A stretch of 64,000 nt of DNA, taken from Octopus sinensis (taxonomy: Eukaryota). Position 1 is the first letter of the stretch. Each line of letters begins with the position of its first letter. The stretch covers positions 16,802,001-16,866,000 of the forward strand of contig NC_043020.1 in NCBI RefSeq assembly GCF_006345805.1. The letters are read 5' to 3'. The notes beneath the pieces are model-generated. The model made no database searches. It saw nothing but the letters and a program-made list of their open reading frames with translations, and was not told where the DNA came from. Shown piece after piece: positions 21,321 to 54,449 of the stretch. The translations under genes were made by a program, and so were the position numbers.

Positions 21321-21442
21321 GATCTATGGATCCATACCAGCGAGCACCTCGTTCTCCCCGTGGAAAAAGACCACAACCTCTTGATGCTAATAATACTGGA
21401 CAAATATTTACTGATGAATGCAAATCTCCAACCAGTGACCAA
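21321..21442 (+). CDS. STXBP5: Tomosyn internal exon (122 nt, phase 1 to 0), entry to hypervariable region
   Basis: ttgttttcag|GA TCT ATG GAT CCA TAC and CAA|gtaaat; (G)SMDPYQRAPRSPR...DECKSPTSDQ matches GSNDPYRREPRSPR...DRCKSPTS. Absent from the ORF track because it has no in-frame ATG ORF of 60 aa. Confidence 0.95.
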
Positions 21443-21633
21443 GTAAATATTTAATTCATTTTTTTTTCTTATTTTTTTTTTCCATTTTTTTTTTATATTA
21501 CTTTCTTATATCTACTTCAAACCTCACTGCAAGCCAAAAACATTTTAACTAATTAATTAATTTTCTTCTCTATCAAAAATTAGCATTAATTATTCCTTTC
21601 ATCAGTTTCAATAACTTTAACCTAAAATATTCA

Positions 21634-21820
21634 AGGCTAATCTATAAATTTCTGAGGCAAATTTATTAATTTCCATAGGAAAGTCTATAAATTTTGCAGC
21701 AATGTCTGAATATCCAAGGCAAATCAATAAATCTCTGAGGTGAACCTATGAATTTATGAGGTAAATCTATGGATATTAGAGGCAAATCCATAAACACCTG
21801 AAGCTAGTCTATAAATAATT
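21634..21820. repeat. Degenerate 21-bp minisatellite, about 9 units (aggcaaatctataaatttctg)
   Basis: Units read by eye: aggctaatctataaatttctg, aggcaaatcaataaatctctg, aggtgaacctatgaatttatg, aggtaaatctatggatattag, aggcaaatccataaacacctg. Confidence 0.8.
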
Positions 21821-21886
21821 GATGTTTTTTACTTAAAACAAAACAATCAAAAACATGAGGAAAAAATCTTATCTACTTTATATAAT

Positions 21887-22394
21887 ACTAGCAGTATCGC
21901 CCAGCGTTGCTCGGGTTTGTAAGGGAAATAACTATATAAGCATTTTTAGAGAGTTACTTCCCTTATAAATTCGGGCTTTCTTAGCCATTTTTGTTTTGGT
22001 GTCTTCAAGCCATGAAGTCGTTGTTCTAAAAGAACGCTGGTTTCCTTCACAACGCATTACGACGTTGATTTCTTTACACTCCCTTCCCCACAGCTTCACG
22101 AGGGAGGGAAGGGGGAGAAGCAAACAGGTGCAGCTGTGAGTGTGGACGCCAACTCCGCCGCCATCGACACACGATGCATTTTATGCATTAAAATGGAATA
22201 AAAAATGATGTTAAATTATTTTTAAAATCGTAGACTCATCGTTGACGCGCGCTAATAGTCAGACGGGCTCGATATGAATCACGACTATAAGATACCCGAA
22301 TTTGGTTAAACTGCACCGCAAAATGTGGGAGGAGTTAGGAATCTAAATCGAAGGGGACAGACACTCACACAACTAGAGTTTTATATATATAGAT
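21887..22394 (+). mobile_element. Non-autonomous Helitron-like (Lep1/DINE-1-type) element
   Basis: 5' actagcagtatcgcccagcgttgctcggg with a small subterminal inverted repeat; 3' acagacactcacac...ttttatatatatagat; no TSD seen; CpG-rich. Confidence 0.55.
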
Positions 22395-22599
22395 TAGATA
22401 ACATGTTAATTTTAAATAAATCTGTATCAGGTAACTACACTGAAATTCTAAAAACTCACCTGGTATGGATATGTATTCCAATATAACTACCTGTTCAAAA
22501 ACATTCTTGAGGGTGTACTTGAATGATGGTGAAAAAAGAAACAAACAGAATTTTGGTCTGACAGCACTGTAAACCACTGCACATGACTGAAGACAGGAA

Positions 22600-23450
22600 C
22601 CAGTAGTGATTTCCACTTGCCAAAACAGTTTGGAGTAGCACCACAACAATTGTCTATGCCAGTCATGAGATACCAATGATGCTAGTCAAACATTGGTATA
22701 TCCTATTTGCCACTATTTACCATATCTCAGCAATTATCCCTGATACTCTAGCTGCCTTTTCTAACATCATATCCTTATTGGCCATTTCAATATATGTGTC
22801 AACTTCAACAGTTGGCTCCTCTCTTGAGTGTACACCCTCTCTCATGTAGTCTCCTCATTTGGCAATTTCTCATACTCGCATTTCTATGCCTGTGTCTTCT
22901 CTGCATCAGTGAGGGTTTGGGTGTGCCACCAGCAATCTATATATACTTTTCTCAGTCATGTTTCTGATTCACACTGACACATTGCTTTGCCATCTGAAAT
23001 TACTCTAACTCACATTATAAAACACCGCCAGCAAACATCTTTCTTTTCTCCATACTAAATATATGACGCATCTATATTCTAGATACCTGGTAGTGTCCCT
23101 TGCTTTCCAGACCTGTCTCTTAGATTTTAATCGTTCTATCTACTGTACCCTATTCCACCATCGTGTCATCTTCCACCTAGCTGGTACTTGTTCCATTCAC
23201 ACATCTGATCTATGTCCGACAGTAGATTATCTTGTAGAAACTCCCAGTTGCCTTCTATGTTATACATCACTTTTTCTTATTTCCTCTTACCTCTTTCACC
23301 TGGTAGTTCTCTGAACTTATGTGTAAGCAAGGGATCTTTCATCTTCTGTATCTTCCTTCTCTAGATTGTTTTGTATCTTTGAAACCATTTCGCTTCTATT
23401 TTGATGTCACAGGTTGGTTTTGCAATACATTCTTCACTGAGGAAAAGTAT
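22600..23450 (-). mobile_element. Heavily decayed RTE-clade LINE ORF fragment (region upstream of and into RT)
   Basis: Minus strand remnants WK.T.WWN and KDMMLEKAARVSGIIAE resemble WKETWWWN and KDMK.GKA.GPSGI.AE. Confidence 0.55.
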
Positions 23451-24193
23451 TCACAACCATCTATATATCCTGTTTCATGGTGAGCGCAAATACTATTCTG
23501 TTCACTTAATTAATAGTTGATCCAATAGCAGAAATCAGTATGGTAAATGGTTTGTGCCATTGAGCTCCAGACTTGATTCCATTTCATTCCTTGTATCATG
23601 TACCATAGCTTTTGCATACATCAAAGTAATTGTCACAATGTTGTCTAACATGTCTATAAAAGACACCAGCCATTATAAGTAGATCACTATCATCCGTTGC
23701 CAAGGCTGTCGCCCAAGGGTCCTCATAAAAACGACCCCTTACACATCCGTCAGTTTTGATCGCAGTGAATATGCAGAAATCAGTGTTGGTGTCATGTTGC
23801 TTGAAAGCTTATTTGATGGATGCTTTTTCAATTTCAGCAATGAACATTCAGTTGTTCATCCAACTGAACTAACTATTTGTTAAATTAAATAAGCAAATAG
23901 CTGGGTATTTCACAGACATATATATATATATGCTCTTAACTTCATTCTCAAGCCATATTAGCATCATGCAATATGTGACAAGACTGGACCAAAAAATTGC
24001 AGGCACTATACATTCATTATGCTTCCACACAGTTTCCAACTACCTAGTTTCACTCACAAGGCTTGGAATGTCATGACTGTAAAATGAACTTCTTAACCTT
24101 TTAGCTATGCCTACATCAGTGGATACAGGCATGGTTGAATCTAAGTTTAATTATTATCACATAGTCTGACTGCCTTAGTTACTTTATCTAACC

Positions 24194-24449
24194 TAGTGGT
24201 TCTCGACCATTTTTTTACCTATGGGCCTATTTGATTCCTCTTTCACTTAGATAGACTTCTGTAGTCATTCAATGTTTAAAAAAATCCTTTTATATTTTTA
24301 TAATTAAATATTATTAGGAATTGTACCAAAAAATTGTTAAAATATTTTGTATGCTGAAGAAGTATAATCAATGTATAGCACATAGATTTTAATGACAAAA
24401 TCTTATATGAACCCCTAAGGGTCAAATGGACTCCATTTGAGAACCACTG
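24194..24449. mobile_element. Intact hAT-type MITE with 8-bp TSD
   Basis: ATCTAACC|tagtggttctcga...ttgagaaccactg|ATCTAACC, perfect 8-bp target-site duplication. Confidence 0.92.
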
Positions 24450-26314
24450 ATCTAACCATTTCTCGACCAACATTATGCTTACTCTACCATGGTTACCACC
24501 CAAAAATATTCATTTGTATCCCGTAAAGAATGAGGTACCCTGGTATATTACCTTTCATTATTCGGTATACATCAGCTTGATTGTATTCTGCCATCTCAAC
24601 ACTCTTTCCAGACATTTTTCATTGTACCAACATTGATAACAGCATTCTTGCAAGTTTCGCACCTGACTTGAAGAGGAGAAATTCCATTGGCAATAGTGAA
24701 ATTTAGGAAGATCTGTTGCAATTATTTCTTGTCAGATACTTAATAACACATTTAGTTTTATTCTCACCTCAATAAATACAATTACCCCAGAGTAATAATG
24801 GTTTAAAATTACATTGACCCCCAGTGCTCAGCTGATACTTATTTTATTGGCCCCAAAAGGATGAAAGGCAAAGTCATCCTCAGCAGAATTTCAACTCAGA
24901 ATGTAAAGACAGGAGAAATGTAACTAAGCAATTTGCCTGACTTGCTAACAGTTCTGCCAACTTACCACCAGAGTTGGCAGAGTAATGATAAAATAACTAA
25001 AGTGGGATGTGATAGTGCGATTCTTGAGCCAAGCTTAACTATACGGTTTATGCATTTCTCTTCTGTTTGGATTAGAATAACAACTCTTTAAGTTATTTTC
25101 AATTGTTGAAAAAAAGTTATAAGTAAGTATTACCATAGTATAAGGTGTATTCAAGGAGAAAAGGCTCAGCAAGAAATTGAACTCATACACTTCACTAACT
25201 GGAGAACTGATAACAGTTTTTTAACTGCTGAGAGACTGAAATAATTAAGATTTTAGAAGAAAAACAATAAGAAGTTGATAATTTCAATAAGAAGAAAAAT
25301 AACTTTTTCATCTAAAAAAAAAAAACTAGTTTAAATTTTATTTAAACTCATTATTGATCACAAACTAATTGGACATCCATCATTACTTTTAAAGTACTGA
25401 TAAAAAATTGTAATTTCCCCAAGATCTTAATTTGGATGTTTCAATATATTATCAACCTCACCAGCTGCATTCACTGATTCTGCCTTCAAAATATAAACAC
25501 CAATGAACAGAGGAATCTGGTGTAGATTTTTTTTAAAAACAAAGATGCAAAAATAGAGGGCAAGTATTTCCTGGCAATAACATGTGTTAAGTTCCAAGTT
25601 TTCTTTTAGCTGTAGTTAGGTTTTGTAAAAGCAGTAAATTTTTATCTGCTAGAATATGAAGAAATGAGAGATGTCAATCATTTCTGTTCAAAAAACATAA
25701 GATGTTTCCAAAATTTTTCTTTTTCCTTTTATTCTTTGTTGTATAAACTTTAAAGAACATGCAACATATAAATTGCTTTGTTTGTTGGTTTTGTTTCTCT
25801 ATCTGCCAGAATATGGTGGATGCAACATCGAAAAAGATGTTACCAGCATGTGTTCTGCTGGAAGAAACATTATTCTATGGAAATGTAATTTACAAATTTA
25901 CCAACAAAATCTTGTATGATTCGATTAAACAAAAACAATTCTACATTTAATTCAGTTGAAACTCACAAACATTCATTCGACAGACATATTTTCTACCATT
26001 TTTCAAAACCGATATGTAAATAAAAATAATACTGCTATTACTAGTAAAACATTATTATTTTTACTACTACTACTACTACTAAATTTTACTTCTTAGAGCT
26101 CCTGATCTTGTTCTGGATAATTCTGTGAGTGCAGACTGCATCCTGTTGTCAAAGGTTTCATGGGGTTTCTTTCCACGAATTATAAAACTTGGTACTTAGG
26201 TGGTAAGTATCATGGAAGATACTCAACACCCAAGTCTCAATCTCAAAATCCTAGTTGTCCTCAATAGAGCAGCTTTGGGGGGTGAAACATTATTATTATT
26301 ATTATTTATTATTA

Positions 26315-26363
<49 letters not shown>

Positions 26364-27353
26364 GATGATGAGCTGGCAGAATTTTTAACACACTGGGCAA
26401 AATGTTTAGTGGCATTTTTTTAGTCTTTACATTTTAAGTTCAAATTCTGCTGAGGTTGACTTTGCCTTTCATCTTTTCAGGCTCCTTAAATGAAGTACCA
26501 GTGGAACACTGGGATAGGTGTAATTGATTAGTCCCCTCCCCACAAAATTTCAGGTCTTGCGCTTTTAGTAGAAAGGATTATTATTGCCTAATGTGTCTAG
26601 AAATGTGGTCAAACTCAGATCCACATTTGTAAAGTGAATTTCTTAACCACATGGTTATGCCTTCACCCATATATTTCCAAAAGTTATTTAAACAAAGTTT
26701 TTGAGAAACATAACATCTCAGGCAGAAACCCATTGATGAAAATTCATTTTCCTCATGACAAAGTAATTCATTCCACTTAGTGAACATTCTATATTTATTT
26801 ACTAACTTCTGACACTGACCACCATCGCTAGTTTCCTCGGACTCCACCATTTCACTTCCATAATTTATATGATCAATGTTAAGTTGAAATTACTCATCAG
26901 TTAATAATAATAATTTATCTAATAATCTCTAAGACTGGCTGCAGTTTGAGGAAATATTTATTTTCTTACTTCATGTTACCATTAATCTATTGTCTGTTTG
27001 CTTTTTTCATCAGATTATTCTGTATATATGATCACATTGTTGAGATATATTTTAATGATCAAAGTAATCCGCAGAATTCTTTCACAAATTAAATTGATCT
27101 GTGTCTCTCCCCACCCTCTCTCTCTCTCAATTTAACCATCATAAATCAGAAAACTTATTGATCTCATATAATTTTCTTGAAGAACCATTTCTTAGTATTT
27201 TATTTTACTCAATTCAACTATCATCTGGTCAATTTCAATTCAGTCTATTTCAGAATATAGTTAGGTATATTCTTACAAGTTATGAGCTAGATAATTAAAA
27301 TATCAACTTACAGGCGTAATATAAACATATATATTACTGATATTGTCAATTGT

Positions 27354-27457
27354 ACCATCAGTTTCACAACTTAAAACAATTCTAGATTATATTAATATTG
27401 TCTGCACCATCAGTTTCACAACTTAAAACAATTCTAGATTATATTAACGTTGTCTGC
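27354..27457. repeat. 52-bp tandem duplication
   Basis: accatcagtttcacaacttaaaacaattctagattatattaa..ttgtctgc at 27354 and 27406. Confidence 0.9.
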
Positions 27458-27692
27458 CAACAAAAATTCATCTCACTTTCCCTGTAATGTTTGCAAGACA
27501 ATGTTTTAATGTTGTTCTGTTTGGTGATTTACCTAAATCACTACGTAAATATAAACTGAGGAAATCTTATACACTGTAGAATAAAAAAATAAAACTGCTA
27601 AAATTCCATACCATACCAGCTTCCATCACTCAGGATATTAAATAAAGGGTGAAACACTTATAGTATGCAAATTAATTGTTTTCAGCTCTCTG

Positions 27693-27996
27693 AATGTTAT
27701 ATGATAATAGTTTTAATTTTACAGTATTTCTTAAAATATGATTCCACTCTAATTATGCAATGGGTAAATGTTGTATCCTGAAATTTGTCTAAACTACAAT
27801 TTTTATATTAAATCAAAGAATTCAATTTGGGGAGCCAAACAATATATTTCACAAAGGATTCCTAATTTTAACACCTGGAACAGTCTATCAAATATAAATG
27901 CCTATTTCTAAAACAAAATCTATTTTATATAAATATGTCCTTTAGCTATATGTTAGCAAGTTAATAATAACAGTACCCAAATCACTATTCAAAAAT
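27693..27996 (+). repeat. 304-bp dispersed direct duplicate of 35081-35384
   Basis: Offset 7388; one mismatch seen (gataatag vs gatcatag). Confidence 0.95.
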
Positions 27997-28149
27997 AGTA
28001 TGTTACCCTACCCTTTACTTGTATAAGTAAAACAGATTAGTTGCTTATTTCCCTGGAATTGGACAAATAATGTGAACACATCTGATGAAACCCCAATAAA
28101 AGTTAAAAATTGATTAAGGTTGTTCATCATTTTTCACTCTTCATAATTA

Positions 28150-28715
28150 ATTTGGATTTTGCCTAGAAAGTTATGCTCCAAGACACAAGTCCAGGCAAGG
28201 TTGTTTTTGAAAGACTAGCAGTCAGCCTTGCATGTTGTCCAAGAGAAAGGCAAAGGCCAATACAGCTTGGCATCAGTGACATCATAACTCCTTCCTCTGC
28301 TGACTGAACTGGAGCAACATGATATAAAACGGCTTTCTCAAGAACACAACACACAGCCCAGTCCAGGAATTGAACTCATTATTGTAAACCCAACACTCTA
28401 ACCACTGAGCCATGTAAAGATGCATGGTTTAGTGGATCATAACATCATGGGTTCGATTCCCAGCAGCATGTTGTGTCCTTGAGCAAGACTTTACTTCATG
28501 TTGTTCCAGTTCACTCAGCTGGCAAAAGTGAGTCATACTTGTATTTCAAAGGACCAATCTTGTTACATTCTCTGTCACACCGAATCTCCCAGAGATCTAT
28601 ATTAAGTGTACGTGTGTTTGTGGAGTGCTCAGCCACTTGCACACTAATTTCACAAGCCGGGTGTTCCATTCATCAGATCAACTGGAACCTTCAATGTCAT
28701 AACAGATGGAGTGCC
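28150..28715. mobile_element. Two SINEs head-to-head: minus copy about 28150-28415 and family B plus copy 28417-28715
   Basis: Both have tRNA-like heads (tggctcagtggttag; tggtttagtgg...gggttcgattccc) and a gtccttgagcaagac-type box. Family B also at 37678-37975(-), 51897-52217(+), fragments at 19110-19378, and a related head at 63361-63510. Confidence 0.8.
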
Positions 28716-31187
28716 TGTTTTTATAGTAGTTAAATTAGCCTTGTTTGTACATTTTCTATGTAGGTTTACATATCTATTTTTTAACGCTAATTCTAGCTAC
28801 TAATCCAGATATAATATAAAATACAATAATTGAAGAAATGTTCACCATTGTCATCATTACACCCAGTTTCCTCATCTAACACCCATGAGACGACATTGTC
28901 AATCTGGCTATTAAACATTAGAAATTTTATTATATATGATATTTGTCTCAATCAAGCCTGGATCATACTTCTTGGCCAATCATTTTTGTGTATTTTATAT
29001 GGAAATATATGTGAACTAGAGCATAATTCATTCCAAGTTTCTTATGGACCAATCTCTACTTTACTACATTTCTGGCTGTGAGTGTGACACAGGATCGTCT
29101 GTAACTCAGTGGAATTTGTGTGACAAGCACTGATTTATCACTAATATAAAGTGAAAAAAACACACAAACTTGCATAAAATATATGTGTGTGTGTGATGTG
29201 CTTCTATGCAGCTTCAGGCTATGGTACCAGTTACGCACTGGGGTCGATGTAATCGACTTAATCCGTTTGTCTTCTCTGTGTTTAGCCCCTTGTGGGTAGT
29301 AAAGAAATAAGTAGTTGCCCATAATACTTTGCACTGGGATCAAAACCTTGTGGCTGAGATGCAATTTTCTTAACCAAATACCCATATCTGAACCCTTACT
29401 CAGTTACTCGACCATAGAACCACTAATGAGAAGTGTTATACTGCATAGTAGCAGTGTAATTTAAGGTACAACAGATCTAGTATTCACATTGTAATGTCTA
29501 AATCTGTTGTATGAATATGAAGTTTAACAATGTATGTATGTTAGCATCATTATCACTGTTTTTGAATTTCACACTCATTCACAGATCTTGCATAAACTAA
29601 TTATATTATCATTAACACCTCAGTCTTTGATGGAGAGTTTATTGCTCTTTCAATACTTGAAGTGTAAATTTACCTTCATTGTGTAAATTTACCTCTGTTT
29701 TTGTGTCAAGTCTGCATATTTCTCGATGTTTTTCTACTTGTTTAACTGAATAATTTTATAGCTTCAGCTAGAGAATTTGATTATTCATATCAATCAGCAG
29801 AGGTGGTTGGTGATGATGATCTATCATGATTAGATACACAGTCTGTATTTGAAAACTGAGACATTTACTTAATCTAGATGTGTTCAAAAGCAATATCGAA
29901 CCTTGTAGGATTTTAAGTGAACACACACACAAGTAGTGAACTAGTGAAGAAGCCTACTTACCAGTCATGTGGTCTTGGGTTCAGTCCCACGGTGTGGCTT
30001 TCTGGGCAAGTATCTTCCACTATAAACCCAGGCTGACCAAAGCATTGTGGGTAGATTGGGTTTACAGAAATTGAAAAAAGTCTGTCATATATGTGTGTGT
30101 TTGTTTATACTCTTGTCTAGACATCACATGATGATTATAAATGAACAGAACCATGATACAAGTGAGGTTGTTTGTTTCCAGTCTTCTGTGAAAAAACATG
30201 CATAAGTATAGGAAAATATTATCCTACTTAGAAACAGGTAAAGGATGGTAACAGGAAGGTATCAAGCTGTAGAAAATCTACCTCAATAAGTTCAATCTGA
30301 CCCATGCCAGCATAGAAAAGTGGACGTTAAATGAGGATGATGATAATTATAATAATAATAATAATAACAAAATATGTACAGTCTATAAGTGTTCACCAAT
30401 TAACCATAAACTGCTTTACTTAGGTTACCCATAAACTACTTATGTTAAAAGCAGTATAATTTATTTTCAATTTATAAGGGGAAAATATTTTAATTCAGTT
30501 TTCAAGCCAAAACTAAAAGCTTTAGTATCAACCACAGAACAATATTTTCTGACTCCCCCACATCACCACCACTTTATAACTATTGTTCATTGATAACACG
30601 TTGAAATGGAAAGAAACCAAGTTAGAGATAATGGCTAAGTATTAGTGTAATGAGAAGCGAACATCTTGATACTTTCTTTCGTGAAGACTAAGGTTATTCA
30701 TTTTGATTTGCTGGAAGTTTTTTTTTTCTGTAATATATGTACTGCTTTCTTAGTAATCAATGTACATTGATTAGCATCAGGGATATATTGCTAAAAGCAA
30801 ACTGAAACCAGATAAATAGTGGAATGAGAAATGAAAAAGAAATTGAAGAAAAATTTCTCTGAGCAAGAAAATTATTGTCTTTTTTATTGAGGCTTTTTAT
30901 TATTATTATTATTATTATTATTAATATCATTATTATTATTTAAGGCAGTGAGCAGGTAAAAACCATTAGCATGCCAGGTGAAATCCTTAGCAGCATTTTG
31001 TCCATTTTTACATTCTGAGTTCAAATTTCATCGAGGCTGACTTTGCCTTTCATCGTTTTGGGATTGATAAATTGAGTATTAGTTCTGGAGATCAATGTAA
31101 TCATCTAGTCCCCCACCACCACCACCCTCAAAATTTCAGACCTTATGCCTTTAGTAGAAAGGATTATTATTATTATTATTATTATTA

Positions 31188-31224
<37 letters not shown>

Positions 31225-32094
31225 GTGTGCTGATAGAATCTTTAAAGTGATGGGCAAAATGCTTTGTGGTATTTCATCCATCAAATTCCACCAAGGTCAG
31301 CTTTGCCATTCATCCTTCCAGGGTTGATAAAATAAGTACCAGTTGAACATTGAGATTGATGCAATCGACTTAGCCCCTCCCCTGAAATTTCTGGTCTTGT
31401 GCCAAAATTTGAAACCATTATTATTATCTTATAATATTATAATCTTATCTTATCTTTGGAAATCATTTACAGATCAATTAATTTTGGAAAGAATTCTACT
31501 TCTTATTTTTAAATGTCTATTTGTACATTTCTTTTGGTTTATGTGCTTCATTATTTCATGAGTTAAATACTTTGTAAGAAATTAACTCCAAAACAATAAG
31601 GAATCTAACTAAAAATTATTTTAAATATCTAATTCTATATGTTGCTAAATAAATATATTTAGTTTACTTTCACTCTCATAATATCCTAATAAACAATAAA
31701 ATGTATTTGATTTGTTAATGTTATCAGTTTAAATATAACAACAATTAGAAATAATTTTGTATTTAATTTTCACTCTTAAATTATCTCGCTTTGATAAATA
31801 TTTAACTTTAATTAGTTTACAGTTAATTGATATCCAGAAACTGAGGAAAGTTTAATAACACTAATCATAAATATACTTAATTTTAATGACTATTTCTTCT
31901 TATTATTATTACATGTAACATTTCAAACATTAGTTTCTCTCTCTGTCTCTTTCTCCACACACACACAAATGGTTTTCATTGTTCTTCCGGCTGTATCAAC
32001 TAACTTTTGTTCTCTAACAAACACATCAGTTACAACTAAATTTCTTACTTTGAAATTCCAGTGGTCCTACATCTCAATGTTAGTAATGGAAATT

Positions 32095-32146
<52 letters not shown>

Positions 32147-32150
<4 letters not shown>

Positions 32151-32490
32151 AATCGAATTGAACCAGCCAGGATCCCTGGTCTGGTGGTACGTAAAAAGCA
32201 CTATCCGACTCGTGGCCAATGCCAGCACCGCCTCGACTGGCTTCCGTGCCGGTGGCACATAAAATACACCAATCCGACCGTGGCCATTGCCAGCCTCACC
32301 TGGCACCTGTCACGTAAAAAGCACCCACTACACTCACGGAGTGGTTGGCGTTAGGAAGGGCATCCAGCTGTAGAAACATTGCCAGATTAGACTGGAGCCT
32401 GGTGCAGCCTTCTGGCTTCCCAGATCCCTGGTCGAACCGTCCAACCCATGCTAGCATGGAGAATGGACGTTAAACGATGATGATGATGAT
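32147..32490 (+). mobile_element. Family E SINE-like element
   Basis: Ends ccaacccatgctagcatggagaatggacgttaaacgatgatgatgatgat; antisense partner of 16251-16603. Confidence 0.8.
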
Positions 32491-32569
32491 ATATACCTCT
32501 CTCTATATCTTTCTCTCTCTCCTTATCCATTTATCCATCTCCCCTCCCTCTCCCTTTCCCCTCATCTAG

Positions 32570-32619
32570 ACTCCAATTTGCAATGTACTTTTAATACCAC
32601 AGCCATTGCCATGTACCAG
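32570..32619 (+). CDS. STXBP5: Candidate 50-nt cassette exon (phase 0 to 2, TPICNVLLIPQPLPCT+AG)
   Basis: Long C/T tract ending ctcatctag|, CAG|gtaaca donor, open in phase 0; sits in the 5' arm of a hairpin; no homology support. Confidence 0.35.
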
Positions 32620-35672: not shown

Positions 35673-35715
<43 letters not shown>

Positions 35716-38311: not shown

Positions 38312-38342
<31 letters not shown>

Positions 38343-38598: not shown

Positions 38599-38639
<41 letters not shown>

Positions 38640-38710: not shown

Positions 38711-39300
38711 ACTTACACAAACATATATGATAGGCATCCACATAGTTACCATCTACCAAATTTCATCCACAAGGCATTGATCAACTTGAGGCTATAGTAG
38801 AAGACACTTGCTCAAGGTGCTGTGCAGTTATATTCAGACCTACAACTACATGGTTTCAAAGAGAGTTTCTTGCACCCGTGTTGTTCCATAAATCTTCATA
38901 TCTCAGACAAGACCCTTTTGGATTTCATTAAGACTGCATTTATCCAGCTGTATCCTATTGAAGTTTGCAAACTGCTTATCCAGTATCATACTTTTATATC
39001 TTCAGTCTCCATCACACACATTTAACTACTTCACTTGTATTCAATTAACAAATTAATTAAAGTAAATGAAGCAGCATCATAGTGAAGTATACCTAAGGTG
39101 TGTTATATTATTATTATTTGGGAACAACTATATTTCTAATTGACAGCTTCTCATGAAAACGCTTTGTTTTTTCAATTTTTAGATAATTTTCTAATCTATG
39201 CATTTGTTGTCTGTTTTGTTTTTTTTTTATCCTTTTTCATCTTAATTTTCTTTTTTCCTAATTTGCATTTTAGTTTGTACACTACTCCCTTATTTTCCAG

Positions 39301-40084
39301 TCCCTCCTCCCCCTGGCAAGTCATCCTCGGCCTGCGAGTAGTGGCTCTACTCCCTGTGGTGGTGAGGAGGAGGAGGAGCAGCAGCTGGTGCACCACCTCC
39401 CCCACACACAAACACCTCAAGTAGCCATTGAACCAACTCCGATGACTACCAAAAGCTACTTATCAAGTGAGTCGATTTGCGAAAAAACTGACAGCACAAA
39501 AGATAACAACGAGACTTGGACAATAATCGAGGTAGAAACAGAACAGAGTGAATCACAGACTGAAGAATCAGTCAGCTTTCACGTAATGCCACCAGTGAAG
39601 ACGGTACCACATCGAACAAAATCAAACAAACTGCCTAAACCAAGTGAGGCTGTGACGCCAATAAAACGCTCCCCATCAGAGTCTAATATTAGAAAACGGA
39701 ACTCTCCTAAAGATGATGATTCTCTATTTTGTAGTAGTTCATCTAGTCGAAACCTTCATGAAAATCGCAATTGTATATCAAGGGAAGCTTACTCAGATGT
39801 AAATTTAACCCAATCTATTCCCGACACCAATATTACTAGTCCCGGTGCCAATTGCAAGGATTCAGAAACATCAATACTACGGAAAATGAGCTCCAGTCTG
39901 AAAGCCTTATCGATTAAAGTGAGAGGCAGCTTGCTTGATGTAGGACATGATACTCGTAAATATAAGCCCCCTCGACGTTTCGGTGATATTGGCAAAGTTG
40001 ATGTAATTGATCTCACAAAGGAAAATGAATGTTCTCACAAAAGACACATGAGCCGAAGTGAAATATTCAAGGGACTGTTTGTAG
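39301..40084 (+). CDS. STXBP5: Large low-complexity, probably alternative tomosyn hypervariable-region exon (784 nt, about 261 aa; alternative donor after 40080)
   Basis: Acceptor cccttattttccag|TCC, phase 0 and compatible with the 21442 donor. Uninterrupted S/T/E/K/P-rich frame SLLPLASHPRP...EIFKGLFV ends at TAG|gtatgt, in a GC-elevated island within AT-rich intron. Assignment to tomosyn rests on position and phase, not homology. Confidence 0.75.
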
Positions 40085-40629
40085 GTATGTTGTGAAATAT
40101 AGTTGAACTTGAAGGTGACTACAGTTTTTATGCTTGCTAAATTTATTCACCGCTTGACTTTCCTCCTTTTTTCAGGGTGAGAGCGCCACCTATTGCTTGT
40201 CATAGCAAGAATTGCGATAAGTTTAACCACTCTTCTAATCCTAGTTTACTTGTACTAATAGCACCAAAGGCCTTAGACATGCATGCAGGTTTTGACCTCC
40301 CCATCCCATTGGCAGGTGACTGTTTGCTTACATAGCAGCTGTTGGTAGTCAATGCATGTACCTGCTTTGCCACTAACCAAACTGATTACCCATATAGTAG
40401 TACTTATATAAGCTAATTCTGTGGTTTTGTCCTCCAGTAAGTCACACATAGCAGAAGACAACTGCCCGTTTATCTATTTCGTAAGGGAACAGCTATGTTA
40501 CTTATGGGGGTAATAAATATTAACTTTTTTTTAATCCACCCACCACACAAAAAAATATCCCTCCCACCCAAAAAAAATCCTAGCTCAACATCTTTATCTT
40601 TTCTTATCCCTAAACACCCACTTATGCAA

Positions 40630-40682
<53 letters not shown>

Positions 40683-40905
40683 ATCTTGAGTCTTAGGAGA
40701 ATCATTACACCAGTAATAACAAGCACATGCAGTGCTGTGTGTGTTTATTACTATTGGTGTAATGACACTCCCAAAACACAAGATTTGTTTCAATATGTGA
40801 ATTCACATCAAGAATCTTCCAAACCAAATACAAAAACAAAGCGTATATATGTATATTTATATAAATATATATATATTTTCATATAGATATATTTATATAT
40901 ATATT

Positions 40906-40960
<55 letters not shown>

Positions 40961-42300: not shown

Positions 42301-42445
42301 ATAGAAGCTGCTTCTCCCAGTCCCAGCCCAAAACAAAAGAAACAGCATCCACACCCAGAACTGAAGCGGACAAAGTCGCAGGCGGCTAGCCGCAAAATTC
42401 AGAAGGCTCAAAGCAACGCATCATTGGAGGATAATAACGGCGGAG
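42301..42445 (+). CDS. STXBP5: Tomosyn hypervariable-region exon (145 nt, phase 0 to 1; donor uncertain, alternative after 42499)
   Basis: ttttttccacttaattttag|ATA; IEAASPSPSPKQKKQHPHPELKRTKSQAASRKIQKAQSNASLEDNNGG, loosely like the basic KTKSRKFSK...SRKLS stretch of vertebrate tomosyn. The donor GAG|gtgcta is weak. Confidence 0.7.
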
Positions 42446-44919: not shown

Positions 44920-44980
<61 letters not shown>

Positions 44981-45125
44981 CATCATTATTATCATTATGA
45001 TTTTTATTATTATTATTATCATCTAGGCAGCAAGTTGGCAGAGTCTTTAGTGTGTTGGACAAAATACTTCGCAGCATTTCTTCCCACTCTTTAAGTTCTG
45101 AGTTCAAATCCCACTGTGGTCAATT

Positions 45126-45169
<44 letters not shown>

Positions 45170-45574
45170 GATCAATTAGTTGTCCATAAGTCAGGAAAAA
45201 GCATACTCAATATAAGTAAAAGTGCAGTTCTGTTTTTATATATTGTCAAGCGGTATACTGGTTATTGTATATAAATGGTTAGCAAGATACTATCAGTTTC
45301 AAGTCACCTGTTGCAACTAGGCAATATTGATGACCCTTCAGACATACTGGCCAGAATTGCATACCCTCGTTGATGCTGGGAGTGCATAAGCTCTAGACTG
45401 GTTCAGTAGTGTTGAAAAGAAGTGAAACAAAACATTGTAAAAAAAAAATTATATCATTTTCATGGGGGGTGGGGTGAAAAAGAGTTGTTTCCCCTGGAAT
45501 ATTGTTAGCCATGGATGAAGCAGGTAAACTGTGTTTGTGTATATATATCATTCCCTAATTCATAAATAGATATA

Positions 45575-46215
45575 ACCAAGATGAATTTACACTCATTAAG
45601 ACAGTATCCAAAAATTTCACCTCTTAAATTTAGGAAAATGCCTAAATAATATGAATTTTTTTCGCATAATTCTTTTCTCTGCCAAGCATAAACTGCATCT
45701 ACTTCCATTCAGCTATGATACTGAACATTCCAGCAACTTCCAGTTGATTTTGTATGGCGTTGCTTCCTCTTTTAACTGTCATATTTAGCTGGCTAGTATT
45801 GTAGCATAGCACTTCATTGGATTCTAAGAGGATCTGCGATTATTTATCTTAGCCTTAAAGGGGTCATCCATTGCCTTAATATATGTCACATCATTACTGT
45901 TGGTCAACACCACTTCTGCTTTGTAGATCACTGCTTCTGTGTTGCATTGACCATTTACTAGGCACTCTACATGAGCATCCTGTCTTTGTCCACAGCATTG
46001 GGATACTAACTATATTTTCATGTGAGGTGCACTGCTGAATGAAACCCTTGAGTTATGTTTATTGAACATTTTCCTATACCTATGATCCTGTGTAAAATGC
46101 ATATTCACTAATCTAAAGAAGGCCTTTCTCAAGCTTTTTGGTATTGAGTAGAGGAGACCCACGTGACTTTTCCATAGTGTTTTTCTCTTGTAGGTGTTAC
46201 AGCTGGGCATATGTT
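45575..46215 (-). mobile_element. Penelope-like retroelement 3' fragment (RT C-terminus plus GIY-YIG endonuclease), decayed
   Basis: FFRLVNMHF...KMFNKHNSRVSFS..P / CLVNGQCNTEAVIYKAEV...TYIKAMDDPFKAKINNRRSS / YKINWKLL / CSLCLAEK matches the PLE pattern C..NG.C...VIY...YIG...FK.R.NNH. Confidence 0.85.
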
Positions 46216-46842
46216 ATATGGCTTTTAAAAATACTAGCTGCCAGAGCCTTGTTGTAGTTGTAGGCCACTATATTAGAGGGTAGATTCGAGATCCTCTTAC
46301 TGACATTCTTTACAAGGTTTTTAAACACTGTAAACAAGTGTAAGGAAGCTGTGTTGATATGCGACAGCCTTTCATTTAGATGTAAAAGTGGTTATGCACT
46401 TATGGCCCATATATTCAGACTTGTCAATATTGCTTAGGTACAATGGTCAGCATAAAATCAATGGCAACATTCTAACCATTTATATATTCCATAAGCACTA
46501 ATATATTGCATGGCCATATATGTGTGTGCTTGTGTATATATGCATGTATATTTGTGTGCATGTATATATATATACACACATATATATACATATACATGCA
46601 TGTATGTATATATATATATATTTTAATGTTTTTTTTGGTGTTCAGTTATAATGCAAACAATTTTACATTAATCTGATGGGTTACTCTATACTTTTGTAGA
46701 GTACAAATTTCTTATTCTTAAACAAGAATGTTGTTGGTAGTGACGTCGAAGTTTCAGCTTGCTAAGCCATCAGCAAATGATGGCTCAGCTGGCCAAAACT
46801 TCAAAGTCACTGTCAACAACATAATTGTTTAAAAATAATACA

Positions 46843-46888
<46 letters not shown>

Positions 46889-47591
46889 CACACACATACA
46901 TACATTATATATATAATGTATGTATATATACACACACTCAGCACACATGTATTGAGCTTTGTTTTTCCTTGTTTCTTCTACTAAACCTATGTGTGTGAGT
47001 ATGTATATAGTGTTTAAAGGTCTGTTCAGACTCTTATTATATCAAAAAAGCTATTTCTTTTATTCCTTTTTTAATTGAATATCTTGTGAGTGATAAGGTA
47101 AAAGGGGCCAACAAAACACACTTGTCTCTCCTGTTCTCATTAACCCACTATAATCTCACTCCTTCTAGTCCCTACACTAAGGACTTTGCCTAAAACTTAC
47201 ACTCTCTCCTGGATTCCGTCCCTATCTACAATTTCTCAACCTCCAGCAAAGATTTACAGCTGTTGAAATTCAAACTCTACCTCCTTCCTGACTAAACCAG
47301 TTAAGAAAAATCAAAAAACAATTTTTAAAATGAAAGTCCTCATCAACAGAGTATTCTCTGCTAAATCTCTTCATTGGAATGGATTTCTACTTGTTTGTTT
47401 ATGATTATTTAGCTTTGTGTGACTTCACTAATCCCCGTCCCCCATCTCCACTTCTCCATCTGCAAGAATCCCACACCAGTTACATTCTAACAAAGTAAGA
47501 GGTTTAAATAATAAAATAACCTCTATTGGGTCCCCTTGGGGTTTTTCTTCAGTCTCTCTTGGCCTTCTCATTTTATATTACCAACTTTCAG

Positions 47592-47614
47592 CTCTTTCTG
47601 TAAACCAAACGATG
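47592..47614 (+). CDS. STXBP5: Candidate 23-nt exon (phase 2 to 1, SFCKPND(G)); alternative acceptor at 47553 in the same phase
   Basis: ccaactttcag|C TCT TTC TGT AAA CCA AAC GAT G|gtatgg; KPND(G) is reminiscent of KPD...DN just before the conserved SFSRSRSSS motif. Confidence 0.35.
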
Positions 47615-47950
47615 GTATGGAACAGTCTTCAGATAATCTTGTGGTGTTCTTTTTTTTTATGTATCATATCTTTTTATTTATTGATTTCATTTTAAACATT
47701 ATTTTTTTTTTAAATCAATGGCCTGGTGATTGTTATCTTTAATTAGTTATTTTGCTGTGTTAATGGTAAAAAAATAATAATAATTATAAAATAATAGTAC
47801 CATGGCGTGTGGGTATATACTTGTTTGGAATACGTTGACATCAGATGGCATAAACAAAATATTTTGGTGAGTATATTAAAAATAAAACCCACATATGTTT
47901 GTCTAGGTAAGTATGTTGGTACAATATCTGAAACCATACATTCAATGCAT

Positions 47951-47951
<1 letters not shown>

Positions 47952-48012
<61 letters not shown>

Positions 48013-48013
48013 A

Positions 48014-48066
<53 letters not shown>
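47952..48066. repeat. (ATT)n microsatellite, about 38 units
   Basis: Direct reading; similar tracts at 26290-26361, 31163-31224 and 44921-45020. Confidence 0.95.
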
Positions 48067-50830
48067 TATAATAAATGGGACTTCAAAAAGGATTTTTTTG
48101 AAAGTATTTTTTTTCGTCATTTCTGATATAATTTGTCGTAATTTCTTGTCACAGCTGGTTAGTTTGCATTGTAACAACTATGATGCTATTGTGGGGCTCA
48201 GGTCTTCTTGTTTCCTCTGTAGAATAGAGGTTGTCTCATCTTCCTACAGAGCAAAGTTTTTGATGTTACTTCAATACCATTTTGAACTTCTTGAACATTC
48301 CAACTTCAGATTATTTTCCTCTTATAATTCTAGTGTGTTATATATTATGTAATTTAAAATAACATTGCAGATTCCTTTATTTTCACTTTTATTCTGTTAC
48401 TGGTTTCAGCCAGGGGCTGAGGCCATGCAAGAGCACCTGGTTTCTAACGTTGTAGGTTGGTAGCTATCAATTTAATTTTGATTGGGTTGAGAATAAATTT
48501 GGCTGTGTTTGTTTCTTGTAGGACACATACTTCTCAACAAACACTTTATGATCTAATTTTGGTAGAGCTTCAATTTGACCATTTCTATCATCCACCTTGC
48601 AATTCATCGTAAATGTCATACCTGCGTGAAAAATCTTAGTTCTGTATTTTATACAAAAGATCATAAGATATTTGCATAGCAGATTTGTTATACAGTTCTA
48701 TCATTGTTGAGCACTAAACTTCTGTCAGCCTATAAACATTGGCTGTGAGAGCTTACATCAATTAGTTCAGCTGTTGCTATCAGCTGAGCTAATTGGTGTA
48801 AGTTATGCATGTTCATCGCTTGAAGTGACAAGGGCCATTTAGTTTCATGAGGACTCAAGATTTACGTGGTGTCTCATCCTTGACCATCTTCAAACCAGTG
48901 GCAAGCCCAGGTTGCTGGACCATGAAAGTTTTTTTCTGCAAAGCCCACCAGATCCATCCTTCACATGCATAGGCAGGCAAGCCTTAATGTTCTAATTAAC
49001 CCTTAGCTGGGACCCTGACAGGTGCTATTACTCCAGGTCAGAGTACAGCTGGGTTTGACTTTAAACTGCATTGTGAGGCCCTAGTATGTGGAACATCCTT
49101 TGAGCCACTATTCTACAAGTTACAGAACAAAGTTATCAGCTGTTATAAAATTCAGAGCTTTTAGCTGAACTCATCTAAGTTATAAATCCTAGAGCTATCA
49201 GCTGAATTAATTAATGTAAATTATAAAATACAAATATTACACTTTCTTTTTTGTCTTTTGTTCCATTCAGTTGTACATCAACTTTAGACATCTGAGATAG
49301 AATGGTGTACGGAATGCTTCATGCCAGCTCAGCACCAACTTTGGCCATTTAGTTATATATTAATTAGTTGAATTACATAGTGCCATCTTCTATCTCAGTA
49401 GACTGATTTTTGTCACATCTTTTTATCACATTGTACAAGCCTTTGCCATATTTTGCCAACCTCTTACACACTGTGCCAGCTTCTTCCATATTTTATCAGC
49501 CTCTCTCACATATGACCAGTCTTCAAAGGCTTTTATTATTTGCAAGTGGGGGAAAAAATCATTTTTCTTTACTTCAAACAAAAAAAAATAAACTTGACCC
49601 TGAATCTGTACTTCCTCCACTATGGTGTTCACACCAGTACCTCACCCCACATACAAAAAAGGACTTTTGTATTCTTGAAAAATTTCTTCCCCTTTTTTCT
49701 CTTTTTTTTTCTATTGTTTTTACATATTTGAAATTAAGTTTATTGTTCATGTAGTAAGCTACAAAATTCTTATATTCTCTCAATTTCCTGACAAAATAGG
49801 AAAGGTATTACCTCAGAAGATGTCCCTAAAGCATTGTCCTGGAGGATCGTCCCTAATTTTTTTCAATCTTTTTTCTGTTTACTTGTATGCTAAATCCAAT
49901 GTTATACTCTACAACATCGATTCAGGCTTAAATATTGCTAAAATGTGCTTTGTTAACTTAGTATAAACTGGTTAATTATTTCTTTGAATTAGTAGAGAAA
50001 TAACATTCTCAAAAAAATAATTTTTTAAAAAGAAAGGATATTTTTTATGATGATAAAAAATTTATTTCAAAGACAAGACCATCCTAGACATAATTATAAC
50101 TGAATCTTTTTTTTTTCCTTCCTTGGTATTATTCTATCCTATCTTTAATGTGTCTTATATAATTGATTATTGTTTTCAAATCACCTCTAATTACCTATAT
50201 GCTGTAGGTGTTTTCAAATACTGGAGAAAGTAACAATCTTAAATATTCTTTCTTTTATCTTTGCTTGTTCCAGTCATTGGACTGTGGCCATGCTGGGGCA
50301 TACTTTTCTCTTTTCTTTTTAAGCCTGGTATTTATTCTATCAGCCTCTTATGCCAAAACTGCTTAGTTACTGGGACGTAAACAAACCAACATCAGTTGCA
50401 AAGTGGTGGTGGGGAACAGACACAAAGGCATATACTCACAGATATATATATATGCACGACAGGCCTCTTTCAGTTTCTGTCTGTCAAATCCTTTCAAAAG
50501 GCTTTGATCAGATCAGAGCTATAGTGGAAGACACTTACCCAAGGTTCTTCACATTGGGACTGAACCTGGAACCATGTGGTTGGGAAGCAAACTTCTTACC
50601 ACACAGCTATGCCTTACTGAAATAGAATAATTTTTTTTTAAGTCATTAAGTTTTTTTTTTGGTTTTTTTGTAAGTCTAAATTAAAACGACTTTATCTGTT
50701 GCTTTTCTGTTGATCTTTTTTGATTTAAAGAAATCATCTTAATTCAGCTTATAAAATTCCTGCACCATTTAAGAATAAGTCCCAAATAAAATTTACTTTA
50801 GCTCAAGTTAGTGTCTTGAAATCATTTTAA

Positions 50831-52579
50831 CCCTTTAGTATTTAAATCGCCCATATCCGGCCAAAATAACTAATCTGTTTTATGTTCAAACTGACCAGAT
50901 CCAGGCTCTCACACCTACCCTACAATGTTATTCTACATTAAGTAATTACACCATCAAGATCTTGAAGATATGAGATAATGCATGATTAATTCAAATCAAT
51001 GGGAATCAATAAGCATTATGCTTGATAGAATAATCTGAACACTAAAGGGTTAAACCTTTTGATACCAATCCATCTAAGACTACCCCTTGTTCTATGATAC
51101 TTAACTTCTCAGTTTTCAAATTAACCCTTTAGCTTTTACGCTAGCCATATGGAGCCCAAATATTCTTGTTTTATGTTCAAACCAGCCAGATCTGGCTTCT
51201 CGTGTCTACCCTACAATATCATTCCAAAAAGAAAAACAATCATATCATCAAAATCTCGAAGCTACAAGATAATGCATGATTAATTTAAAGCAAAGTGAAT
51301 GAATGCACATTACAATTGGCAGAAGAATCTGAATGCTAAAGAGTTAAAACAGGATTTTAGGTAAGAATCTTCTTTTAGACTTATCACAAAAACTACCTTA
51401 ATAATAATTTTTTGTCATTTTACTATTCATTTGAAATATTTATTAGAACATGCAACAGGTTGGCTGAGTCATTAGAGCATCAGTTTTTAGTCAAAATCTC
51501 AGCACTGTGAGTTCAAATCTCACTGAAGTCAACTTTGCCTGGTTGATAAAAAAAAGATACAATGTACCAATCTAAGGTGTGGGGTTGGCAGAACTACCTT
51601 AATAATAATTTTTTGTCATTTTACTATTCATTTGAAATATTTATTAGAACATGCAACAGGTTGGCTGTCATTAGAGCATCAGTTTTTATTCAAAATCTCA
51701 GCACTGTGAGTTCAAATCTCACCAAAGTCAACTTTGCCTGGTTGATAAAAAAAAGATACAATGTACCAATCTAAGGTGTGGGGTTGGCAGAACTTAAGCA
51801 GTGAAGTAGAGCTTTAATCTTTTATTATCCAGATTACTGTCAGATGTAATACTTATTTATCTGCATTGTTTTGAATTAATCATGCATTATCTTATAGAAG
51901 GCTTGTGGTTTAGTGGTTAGGGTATTCAGCTCACGGTCATAGGGTCATGAGTTCAATACATGGCAACATGTTGTATCTTCGAGCAAGATGCTTTATTTCA
52001 TGTTGCTTCTGTCCACTCAATTGGTAAAAATGAGAAGTACCTATAATTCAAAAAGGCCGGCCTTGTCAGATTTTGTGTCATGTTGAATCTCTCTGAGAAG
52101 TACCTTAAGGGCACATGTGTTTGGGGAGTGCTCAGTCACTTGCATGTTAATTTCATGAGCAGGCTGTTCCGTTGACTGGCTCGACTGGAACCATCATCAT
52201 TGTCACCAATGGAGTGCATGTCATAGCTTTGAGATTTTGATGACGTGATTATTTATTTTTCGAATGACATTGTAGGGTAGGTGTAAGAAGCCAGATATGG
52301 CAAGTTTGAGCATAAAACAAGCAGAATATTTGGGCCAGATGCTAACGGATTAAATTAAGCTTTAGCATTCAGGTTACTCTCTCAAATGTAATGCTTATTC
52401 ATTCACCCTGTTTTGGATTATTCATGCATTATCTTGTAGGTAAGAGGTATTCATGGTGTGCTTGCTTATTTTTAAAAAGACATTATAGGATAGGAATATT
52501 TTGGCTATATTTGACCAGTTTGAACATAAAAATCAGTAGAATATTTAGGCTGGAAATGGTCAGTTTGAATGGTAAAGGA
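50831..52579. mobile_element. Cluster of four related piggyBac-type MITEs (two forward, two reverse; one split by a SINE B)
   Basis: TTAA-flanked copies at 50831-51049 and 51125-51343 (forward), 51818-52349 (reverse, SINE at 51897-52217) and 52359-52579 (reverse); partial relatives at about 2912-3065 and 3590-3727. Confidence 0.8.
51391..51794. repeat. About 201-bp tandem duplication with a few differences
   Basis: aactaccttaataataatt at 51391 and 51592; aact at the junction; 2-nt indel and 3 substitutions seen. Confidence 0.9.
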
Positions 52580-54440
52580 TTAAAAGTGACATATTTTGAC
52601 CAAGTTTAGTGATTTATTTTATATAGCTAATTTAGTTCTGTTGTCTCTTTTAGTTCTTAAACTTATTTATTTACTTTTAGTTGTTGCAAGATATCTTAAG
52701 ATTAGCACTTAAAGGGTTCTTTTAGTGCAGTATTACTAATACCCTTGAGAATATCATAAATGCTACATACTCTTATACTTTGCTCCTATAAACATCTGTC
52801 CATGTATTTAAGTTGTAATTAAGCTAAATATTCTACAGAGAATCTATAATTACTATTTCGTAATTATGAAATTATATTTCATTCAACTCCATTACAAATT
52901 AACCCACCTGCTCTCTTGTTTCTGAAATCTATTAAAATTGTTTAGTTTTCTTTTTAATAATTTAGATTTATATTCAATGATTTTTTTTCCCCCTTTTTTG
53001 ATTTTTTTAATAATTGTTGCCAGAAAAATATTTCAGATAAAATTGAAATTTCTTGAAACCTCCACATGTTGTTCTTAGACTACAGTTTCAGTTGCTTTTC
53101 TTTTACTATTCTTCATCATTACCATTCACTCACTGTTTTCTGTCTAATCTACCCATTGACTCTAAACCTTCTACCAGACATATGGTAGGTCTGTTAAATC
53201 TATAATGCTTTCATTTTTCTAAAGAAAGAAGTAGAATTGAATTTTTTCTTCCGATTTCTAAAACCTTTAACTTTGTCTCATTTTGTTTATGAAATCAATG
53301 TCTTTAAGTATATATAGTGTTGTTGCTATGATTACTATTATTATTATTATTATTATTACTACTATGTCTGTACTGATTGATACATTCCCTTTCTCACTAA
53401 CATCTGTCACCATCACCAAACACCAACTTTATGTTCCTCTTACATAATCCTCCACCACAGCTCTTCAATTTACACATATCTTTCATTTGAATTGACACAC
53501 TGCTTTAGCGGCTCTTCTGCCATCTTTCTCCCAACACTTCACACCAATTACACTTAAACTTCCTTCTGCAGCAATACCTCTTCCCATCCCTCATTAACTT
53601 TCCATTCTTGTTGTAAACCTAAAGAAATCACACTACATTGATTGCACCAAAGCCAATCTAATCCCAACACTTCTTGTCTTCCCATCAACTCAACTTTGGA
53701 CTATGTTCTTCATTTGATTTGGTTTCATTTATCACAAACATAAGTCTTTAGATAGCTCATTAATTGCTTATTACCATAATAATTCAATTTACAGAATTGT
53801 CTATTTTAACTTTCATTCATAAAAATTTTCTACTTAAAATTCCAAATGAACTTATTCAATGATCTGTTTCTAATTTAAAATTTTTCTCTTCTTCATAATC
53901 ATTTGATTTTCATTAAAATATATTTAGCTACATTTTGAAGTTTTAACTTTATCAATTTAAAAGTTTTTTTAACCTAATAAATGGCTGAGTCTGGTTTTAT
54001 CTTTTATCATAAATTTTAAATCCTATTTAAATTTACTTAAAAGCATGTAAATAAAATTACATTAAATCTATGAAACAAATGGATGAGACAACAGTTTTAA
54101 TTATACTCAGTATTTTTCTAAGAATATTTATTTTTTTCCCTTAGTTTTCATATCAACATCTTAATTCTCTTCAGTAGCATTTAAAAATATTATGCCAAAG
54201 TTGGTCATTTTATAGCATTTCTTTCCTGGATTATAACATGGTTGCTTATTCACTGGGAACTCAGCCTGAAATTATGGCTTGTTTTATGAGAGGAAAACAA
54301 ATATACAGAAATATCCCAACAGTATTGTTGGCCTAAGATCCCATGTTGAATCCTGGTAGTTGCCAAAAATAAAAATCTTTAACTTTCCAATGGTAACTTG
54401 CATTTTTTTTCTTTCTAAACTTTTCATCTGCCATCTATAG

Positions 54441-54449
54441 GACACTCAA
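54441..54449 (+). CDS. STXBP5: Candidate 9-nt microexon GACACTCAA
   Basis: Branch-like ctaaac, pyrimidine tract, TGC, tag acceptor and perfect CAA|gtaagt donor; frame-preserving with no stop in any phase. Confidence 0.5.

Follow-up and report, generated by a model that had tools for sequence, protein, structure and literature searches.

A long and a short loop exon in an octopus tomosyn gene: a putative mutually exclusive pair with a candidate intronic enhancer

Two exons for one loop

Tomosyn acts to restrain the fusion of synaptic vesicles, its variable loop is a tuning site in vertebrates and flies, and the fly isoforms differ in the strength with which they suppress release. The DNA considered here, a stretch of 64,000 nucleotides (nt) from Octopus sinensis (NC_043020.1, positions 16,802,001 to 16,866,000; hereafter the window, numbered from its own first letter), carries on its plus strand part of a tomosyn gene (STXBP5, Lgl family), as judged by comparing exon translations with tomosyn proteins. 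Beyond E1, the final common exon ahead of the variable loop, lie a long exon, B1 (39301..40084, +, 784 nt), and a short one, B2 (42301..42445, +, 145 nt). With slightly better than even confidence, these are taken to be a mutually exclusive pair of the type found in worm and fly tomosyn, the long member being specific to octopods and followed by a conserved enhancer of Rbfox type. After E1, which is left in phase 0, the transcript would take exactly one of the two non-homologous exons. B1 would insert ~261 residues of octopod-only disordered loop, B2 would give 48 residues with a basic KRTKSQ motif, and either would then be joined to an exon starting DKNDGSSFSRSRSSS, which is entered in phase 1 and located past the window end.

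What points to a choice of one, rather than to both or neither? A transcript that leaves E1 in phase 0 must take up one 3n+1 unit, and no more, to arrive in phase 1, and since both exons are of this class (784 and 145 nt, the former on the condition that B1 ends at the donor at 40084, which splice-site scoring favours), inclusion of both shifts the frame, as does skipping of both, a pattern characteristic of mutually exclusive exons. B2 read after B1 spliced at 40084 gives RSCFSQ...VAGG and then a stop inside B2 (frame 2), and such a double product would be a substrate for nonsense-mediated decay (NMD). A preliminary description of this stretch, drawn up from its letters, had proposed that frame and NMD limit which exons can be combined, and for B1 and B2, both 3n+1 and with that stop inside B2, the logic is plausible.

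The long exon

Is an exon of such length, absent from both UniRef protein models of the region, real? A protein search with E1+B1+B2 as query found three contigs of two other octopods for comparison, L001 and L002 (Logan SRR11869391 and SRR11869390) and L003 (ENA ERZ21867824), the last from a distant octopod, and as all three are collinear with the window across both intron flanks they are genomic contigs and not spliced ones. Identity of B1 to the window is ~90% in DNA and 96% in protein for L001 and L002, and 78% in DNA and 67–69% in protein for L003. The open reading frame (ORF) stays open in all three octopod species (that of the window and these two), with indels of 3 to 9 nt that are multiples of three, and both acceptor and donor are invariant among them. 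Differences between the window and L003 are distributed over codon positions 1, 2 and 3 as 49, 46 and 98, and the nonsynonymous rate (dN) of 0.20 against a synonymous rate (dS) of 0.86 gives a dN/dS of 0.23, with 0.11 for the C-terminal two thirds. No start codon is conserved among the octopod B1 ORFs. Conservation against L003 starts ~45 nt ahead of the exon, in a flank (39256..39300, +, ...cccttattttccag) which holds the pyrimidine tract and CAG acceptor and has 4 mismatches or gaps in 46 columns, and the entry frame of B1 is the phase 0 in which E1 exits. The acceptor scores 8.7; this and all other splice-site scores come from position weight matrices (PWMs) that are approximate and vertebrate-like and were not trained on octopus, with the base composition of the window as background. 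With purifying selection, in-frame indels and conserved splice sites all present, B1 is by its conservation a real protein-coding exon, presumably used in mRNA.

The product, of ~261 amino acids (aa), is a Ser/Lys/Glu-rich loop with conserved islands, namely PHRTKSNKLPKP, IKRSPSESNIRKRNS, ISREAYSDVNLT, RKMSSSLKA, PPRRFGD.GKVDVIDLTKENE and KRHMSRSEIFKGLF, and basic-Ser motifs sit in invariant ones (the first, second, fourth and last of these). It is predicted to be disordered, the mean AlphaFold2 confidence (predicted local distance difference test, pLDDT) being 44.5 from a shallow alignment, with no residue above 70. It matches no Pfam family, no homologue outside the octopod cluster turned up when 1.84 billion representatives were searched by profile, and between B1 and B2 there is no detectable similarity.

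Inside B1 there are further strong GT donors, at 39361, 39466 and 39643 (+), with PWM scores of 9.7–11.0 and corresponding exon lengths of 61, 166 and 343 nt, all 3n+1, so that each would be in frame with the downstream exon. That they serve graded-length isoforms was considered and rejected: they come from xGT-GAG (Ser/Gly-Glu) codons, L003 has weakened or lost two of them, and they are probably incidental.

The short exon

B2 is known from protein models. When 17363-17508, 18842-18930, E1 (21321..21442, +, 122 nt, exit phase 0, SMDPYQRAPRSPR...CKSPTSDQ) and B2 are joined, the translation is an exact segment of the O. bimaculoides UniRef entries A0A0L8GKI6 and A0A0L8GJB4. B2 itself, entered in phase 0, left in phase 1 and encoding IEAASPSPSPKQKKQHPHPELKRTKSQAASRKIQKAQSNASLEDNNGG, matches both at 100%. 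Both models go from E1 to B2 and on to the exon starting DKNDGSSFSRSRSSS (DKNDGSSFSRS...), the junction being ...NNGG/DKNDG. That the exons belong to the tomosyn hypervariable loop region, that the next exon is entered in phase 1, and that the loop region holds a short exon and a very long one, both compatible in frame with their flanking exons, had all been claimed or assumed in the preliminary description, and all are borne out.

The splice sites of B2 are weak by the same approximate PWMs (2.7 and 4.0). Its motif, PELKR[TS][KR]SQ..RK[IL]QK..AS.ED, which in octopus reads PELKRTKSQ..RKIQKAQ..AS.ED, is present in the tomosyns of the bivalves Tegillarca (E 6e-7) and Dreissena (E 3e-6), and in those of tick, beetle, spider and mosquito it is reduced to RR.KSQ with weak scores (E 0.2-2 for the tick and beetle matches, in a database of 119 sequences). 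In these other tomosyns it occupies the same position, between the CKSPTSDQ anchor, with which E1 ends and which is kept in other animal tomosyns, and the SFSRSRSSS segment. On shared motif and position, B2 is the ancestral loop exon.

Tandem donors at the end of the long exon

B1 ends with GTAG/GTATGT (40081-40090), in which two donors 4 nt apart are kept in three octopod species. The downstream one, at 40084 (TAG/gtatgt), scores 7.6 bits, and that at 40080 (TTT/gtaggt) scores 2.2. Since the former is the stronger, B1 would be 784 nt long and so 3n+1, the class that lets it join the phase-1 downstream exon with B2 left out. Donor 40080 makes an exon of 3n that is in frame with B2, whereas an exon ending at 40084 is in frame only with B2 skipped; given this difference, donor choice could be coupled to inclusion of B2.

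The weaker donor is the basis of an alternative in which B1 is an optional in-frame cassette of 780 nt ahead of a constitutive B2, so that the loop would be either short (B2) or of ~308 aa (B1 and B2 in series). As 780 is a multiple of three the frame runs on into B2, which is in both annotated O. bimaculoides models; the GTAGGT donor is retained in all three species, and vertebrate tomosyns have additive cassette exons in just this region (PMC3188574). However, at 2.2 bits against 7.6 for its neighbour 4 nt downstream the donor needed is a poor one, its conservation carries no information, the flank being conserved throughout, and the closest documented protostome cases, in worm and fly, are mutually exclusive rather than additive. 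The cassette is unlikely, if not negligibly so. It corresponds to the longer of the two routes put forward in the preliminary description. Both exons of that route are real, B1 from its conservation and B2 from the protein models, but the route as drawn, which admitted either donor, was inconsistent: if donor 40084 is used, B1 is left in phase 1, and then it cannot lead into B2.

The intronic block after the long exon

Directly after B1 comes an intronic element of 296 nt (40085..40380, +) which is ~91% identical to L003, and 92–96% identical in most 50-nt windows, as compared with 64–88% for the B1 exon, in which 36–48% of same-amino-acid codons differ from L003 across most of its length. In it are two copies of UGCAUG, at 40280-40285 and 40353-40358, identical in the window, L001 and L003 and within 270 nt of B1 on its downstream side, inside the 300 nt range. 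UGUUGUG, at 40088-40094, adjoins the B1 donor and reads UGUUGUA in L003. At the window's own density, the Poisson probability of two UGCAUG in 296 nt is ~0.01, and among the six features under study B1 has UGCAUG within 300 nt and the other five do not. A pair of UGCAUG downstream, in an intron block more conserved than its exon, is the classic signature of a downstream enhancer, and B1 has the feature by which an Rbfox-regulated exon is recognized in sequence, a conserved UGCAUG no more than ~300 nt downstream. The block is most likely a single-stranded splicing enhancer of Rbfox/CELF type, and as such a candidate; B1 inclusion would probably be driven by it, with the two UGCAUG as Rbfox-type sites and UGUUGUG at the donor as a CELF-type one.

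Other roles for the block were tried and rejected. As a structured RNA it would be odd, with a fold z of +1.77, less stable than shuffles, and no Rfam match either at gathering score or at E <= 1. As an editing-complementary, docking or selector site it finds no partner, antisense matches in the window being <=15 nt long with E >=0.95; the inverted repeats found in this search are all TA microsatellite. For a second exon hidden in it (ttttttcag/GGTGAG... at ~40176), inspection shows substitutions that lack codon periodicity and conservation that runs unbroken from the donor. Elsewhere, four TGCATG are present within 90 nt at 46507-46597 (+), and as that stretch is TG/TA microsatellite the cluster is compositional.

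Could the conserved 300 nt instead be a 3′ untranslated region? B1 would then be an alternative last exon, with read-through of its donor, a stop after ...GLFVGML and polyadenylation nearby, giving a truncated tomosyn devoid of the second propeller half and the SNARE motif. There is indeed an in-frame stop 11 nt beyond 40084, placed identically in three species (40093-40095, +; TGA in the window and in L001, TAA in L003), the downstream 300 nt are very conserved, and AATAAA is present near 40512. Yet in sequence this AT-rich one AATAAA per kb or so is to be expected, conservation fades out before 40512 is reached, the donor consensus is good, the exit phase of a 784-nt exon fits the downstream exon exactly (a fit of 1 in 3 by chance), and the worm and fly precedents are internal, mutually exclusive exons. 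A terminal B1 is accordingly judged quite improbable. Retention of the intron after B1 would yield a truncated protein ending ...GLFVGML.

Small in-frame intervals in AT-rich intron

The preliminary description also had a second route, a short-loop one made of two small exons that bracket the B exons, A1 (32570..32619, +, 50 nt) and A2 (47592..47614, +, 23 nt), with an optional 9-nt microexon, M (54441..54449, +), after either route. All six intervals then named do have the AG acceptors, GT donors, lengths, phases and peptides given for them (E1 122, A1 50, A2 23, B1 780 or 784, B2 145 and M 9 nt), the small ones with respectable acceptor and donor scores (9.1 and 7.5 for A1, 4.9 and 6.9 for A2, 8.5 and 8.9 for M), and 50 + 23 = 73 is 3n+1, the required phase change. 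C. elegans tomosyn also includes cassette microexons, of 12 and 27 nt, but at other places in the gene.

How many such routes does chance provide? The first scan was for pseudo-exons of 9-300 nt between positions 21443 and 63990, with sites at least as good as the weakest in the A1–A2 route (acceptor >= 4.9, donor >= 6.9 bits). The plus strand has 98 of them, from which open in-frame routes can be built with one exon (8) or with two (63), and the antisense strand, which is similar, has 97, with 8 and 46, respectively. When exons of up to 900 nt were allowed and junction stops excluded, at the same thresholds, there were 86 two-exon in-frame routes, 21 of which bracket B1 and B2 as A1 and A2 do. 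A1 also pairs in frame with a 26-nt interval at 45996-46021 (+) whose sites are better than those of A2; at 9.3 and 9.3, they are the best paired scores of any micro-interval in the window. M is no rarer in kind, since the window has four micro pseudo-exons (3-30 nt) on its plus strand and five on its minus strand whose two sites both score at least 7 bits. Frame-compatible tiny exons are to be expected by the dozen in 40 kb of AT-rich intron and are not to be read as isoforms. A1, A2 and M were picked because their splice-site scores are decent, and frame compatibility adds nothing.

Nor does the immediate setting help. A1 has stop codons immediately on both sides, and just upstream of it is a repeat of ~220 nt (32272-32495, +) resembling a short interspersed element, with an inverted copy at 16256-16465 (-; 86% identity) and shorter fragments near 15390 and 30300. 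The peptide of the A1–A2 route is hydrophobic and Cys-rich, as against the polar loop of tomosyn, and is without positional homologue; a weak likeness to vertebrate PQSHPSTSS was discarded as chance, that motif sitting in a different, upstream tomosyn loop. A1, A2 and M are all three absent from A0A0L8GKI6 and A0A0L8GJB4, no transcript or annotation support was found for A1 and A2 and no homology for A1, and six-frame ORFs taken from the surroundings of A1, A2, M and B2 and used as protein queries fetched no orthologous DNA, L003 ending short of these sites. We know of no tomosyn with an interleaved arrangement. A1, A2 and M are best read as chance AG...GT intervals, and the interleaved switch built on them is highly improbable; the 9-nt exon is likewise unsupported.

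Weighing the exclusive pair

Several considerations weigh against reading B1 and B2 as an exclusive pair under Rbfox-type control. Protein searches with two queries, E1+B1+B2 and the conserved tomosyn sequence that flanks them, returned no spliced product with B1 or with A1 and A2, just the two O. bimaculoides models (E1 to B2) plus genomic ORFs. There is thus no transcript-derived protein containing B1 in the collections searched, and since no such product was found, the use of B1, its donor and the exclusivity of the pair are all things that we infer. The ranking of the donors is from the approximate, vertebrate-like matrices that were not trained on octopus; as both tandem donors are conserved, some use of 40080, with B1 and B2 together in frame, may occur; and read-through from B1 runs, in each of the three species, into a stop 11 nt past the donor (FVGML and then the stop), which would suit an alternative terminal exon as well. 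The UGCAUG pair reaches just P ~0.01, and the block as a whole is conserved regardless. The comparison of B1 and B2 with the worm and fly exons is limited to layout, length class and position. Finally, absence of evidence for A1, A2 and M is not evidence of absence.

A more ambitious reading joins all of these features. An octopod loop exon of ~261 aa, unseen in the other lineages searched and missing from both UniRef models, would be chosen over an ancestral short exon by a near-invariant 300-nt enhancer of Rbfox/CELF type; the choice between the two conserved donors 4 nt apart, 40080 and 40084, would be coupled to whether the next exon is included or skipped, giving three productive isoforms (short, long, and long plus short); and the long/short 3n+1 layout would be an ancient protostome feature of nematodes, insects and molluscs. 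As a whole, this is rather unlikely.

Gene context and other features of the window

Assignment to tomosyn/STXBP5 follows from homologues named syntaxin-binding protein 5, an Lgl_C (PF08596) context and the anchor DPYQR.PRSPR...CKSPTS. The two constitutive exons upstream of E1 are at 17363..17508 (+; EYSTALKVKPSQ...SSYG, with AG/GT borders) and 18842..18930 (+; LMAFGNESG...PDLYG), both exact matches to O. bimaculoides protein. Because the exon starting DKNDGSSFSRSRSSS is outside the window, all of 42446 to 64000 is, on present knowledge, intron.

The first 48 residues of A0A0L8GKI6 (MRGWQTIGPRQCC...) map to 10693-10836 (+) at only 92%, the other exons being at 100%. That segment directly follows a long ORF of TG/TA microsatellite, and A0A0L8GJB4 has a different 5′ end, not found in the window. 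The ‘first exon’ of A0A0L8GKI6 is probably an annotation artefact, or else the window is from a close relative of O. bimaculoides. Upstream of the mapped exons, identical translated matches (RSQPLDYEVTGYRFSSAC) at 7693-7746 and 9151-9204 (+), ~1.46 kb apart, indicate a local duplication or repeat. On the minus strand, an ORF at 56101-56445 has a weak match to reverse transcriptase (RVT_1, E 1e-4, below the Pfam cut-off) and by this likeness is likely a decayed retrotransposon fragment inside the intron.

Comparison with known systems

If the exclusive pair is correct, what would it mean? The worm-type layout of a long and a short 3n+1 exon would also be present in a mollusc, which would hint at an old protostome splicing module, and the octopod-only long exon with its phosphorylation-like motifs, together with the conserved intronic element, would provide a handle on tuning of release probability specific to neuron type in cephalopods.

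The octopus case is like that of Rbfox-dependent neuronal exons in having two UGCAUG at most 300 nt downstream, in a block more conserved than the exon, though their count is just modestly above background (P ~0.01). In vertebrate tomosyn-1 and -2 the hypervariable region (isoforms s, m, b and xb) is a regulatory loop subject to phosphorylation by protein kinase A and to SUMOylation (PMC3188574). There too the stretch from the conserved CKSPTS anchor to the SFSRSRSSS segment holds alternative exons, and B1 and B2 carry basic-Ser motifs (RTKS, RKRNS and KRHMS) that by sequence are candidate phosphorylation sites. However, the vertebrate exons are additive cassettes, some isoforms skip all of them (zebrafish X5, for one), and none has similarity to B1.

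Drosophila tomosyn has the mutually exclusive exons 13A and 13B, one highly conserved across insects and the other poorly, in a loop off the WD40 core (PMC8612732). The contrast within that pair is paralleled by B2, which extends to bivalves and weakly to arthropods, and B1, which is confined to octopods, and the position of B1 and B2 is consistent with a loop projecting from WD40 like that of the fly exon (PMC8612732). Functional differences between isoforms are known in fly and none for octopus.

The C. elegans gene tom-1 offers a direct precedent for the layout. Its non-homologous mutually exclusive exons, validated by reverse-transcription PCR, are of 490 and 124 nt, both 3n+1 and with the long one first (PMC3627589, PMC4165533); they were named 13A/13B, and 14a/14b in WS239. 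The intron between them is of 1371 nt, their exclusivity is partly NMD-dependent, and they are regulated by UNC-75/CELF (PMC3627589 Table 1, PMC4165533 Table 1). In worm and octopus alike the alternative exons are adjacent, with a long first exon (490 vs 784 nt) and a short second one (124 vs 145 nt), all of 3n+1, and the intron that separates them runs to a kilobase or more (1371 vs 2216 nt). The differences are in regulation, since the worm choice is by UNC-75/CELF whereas the octopus motifs are mainly UGCAUG, of Rbfox type, with one UGUUGUG at the donor, and in strictness, since exclusivity in octopus is our inference and the long exon of octopus could also end 4 nt earlier, at a second donor which would allow double inclusion in frame. 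Alternative long and short loop exons were already known from worm and fly tomosyn; what is put forward here is their extension to octopus.

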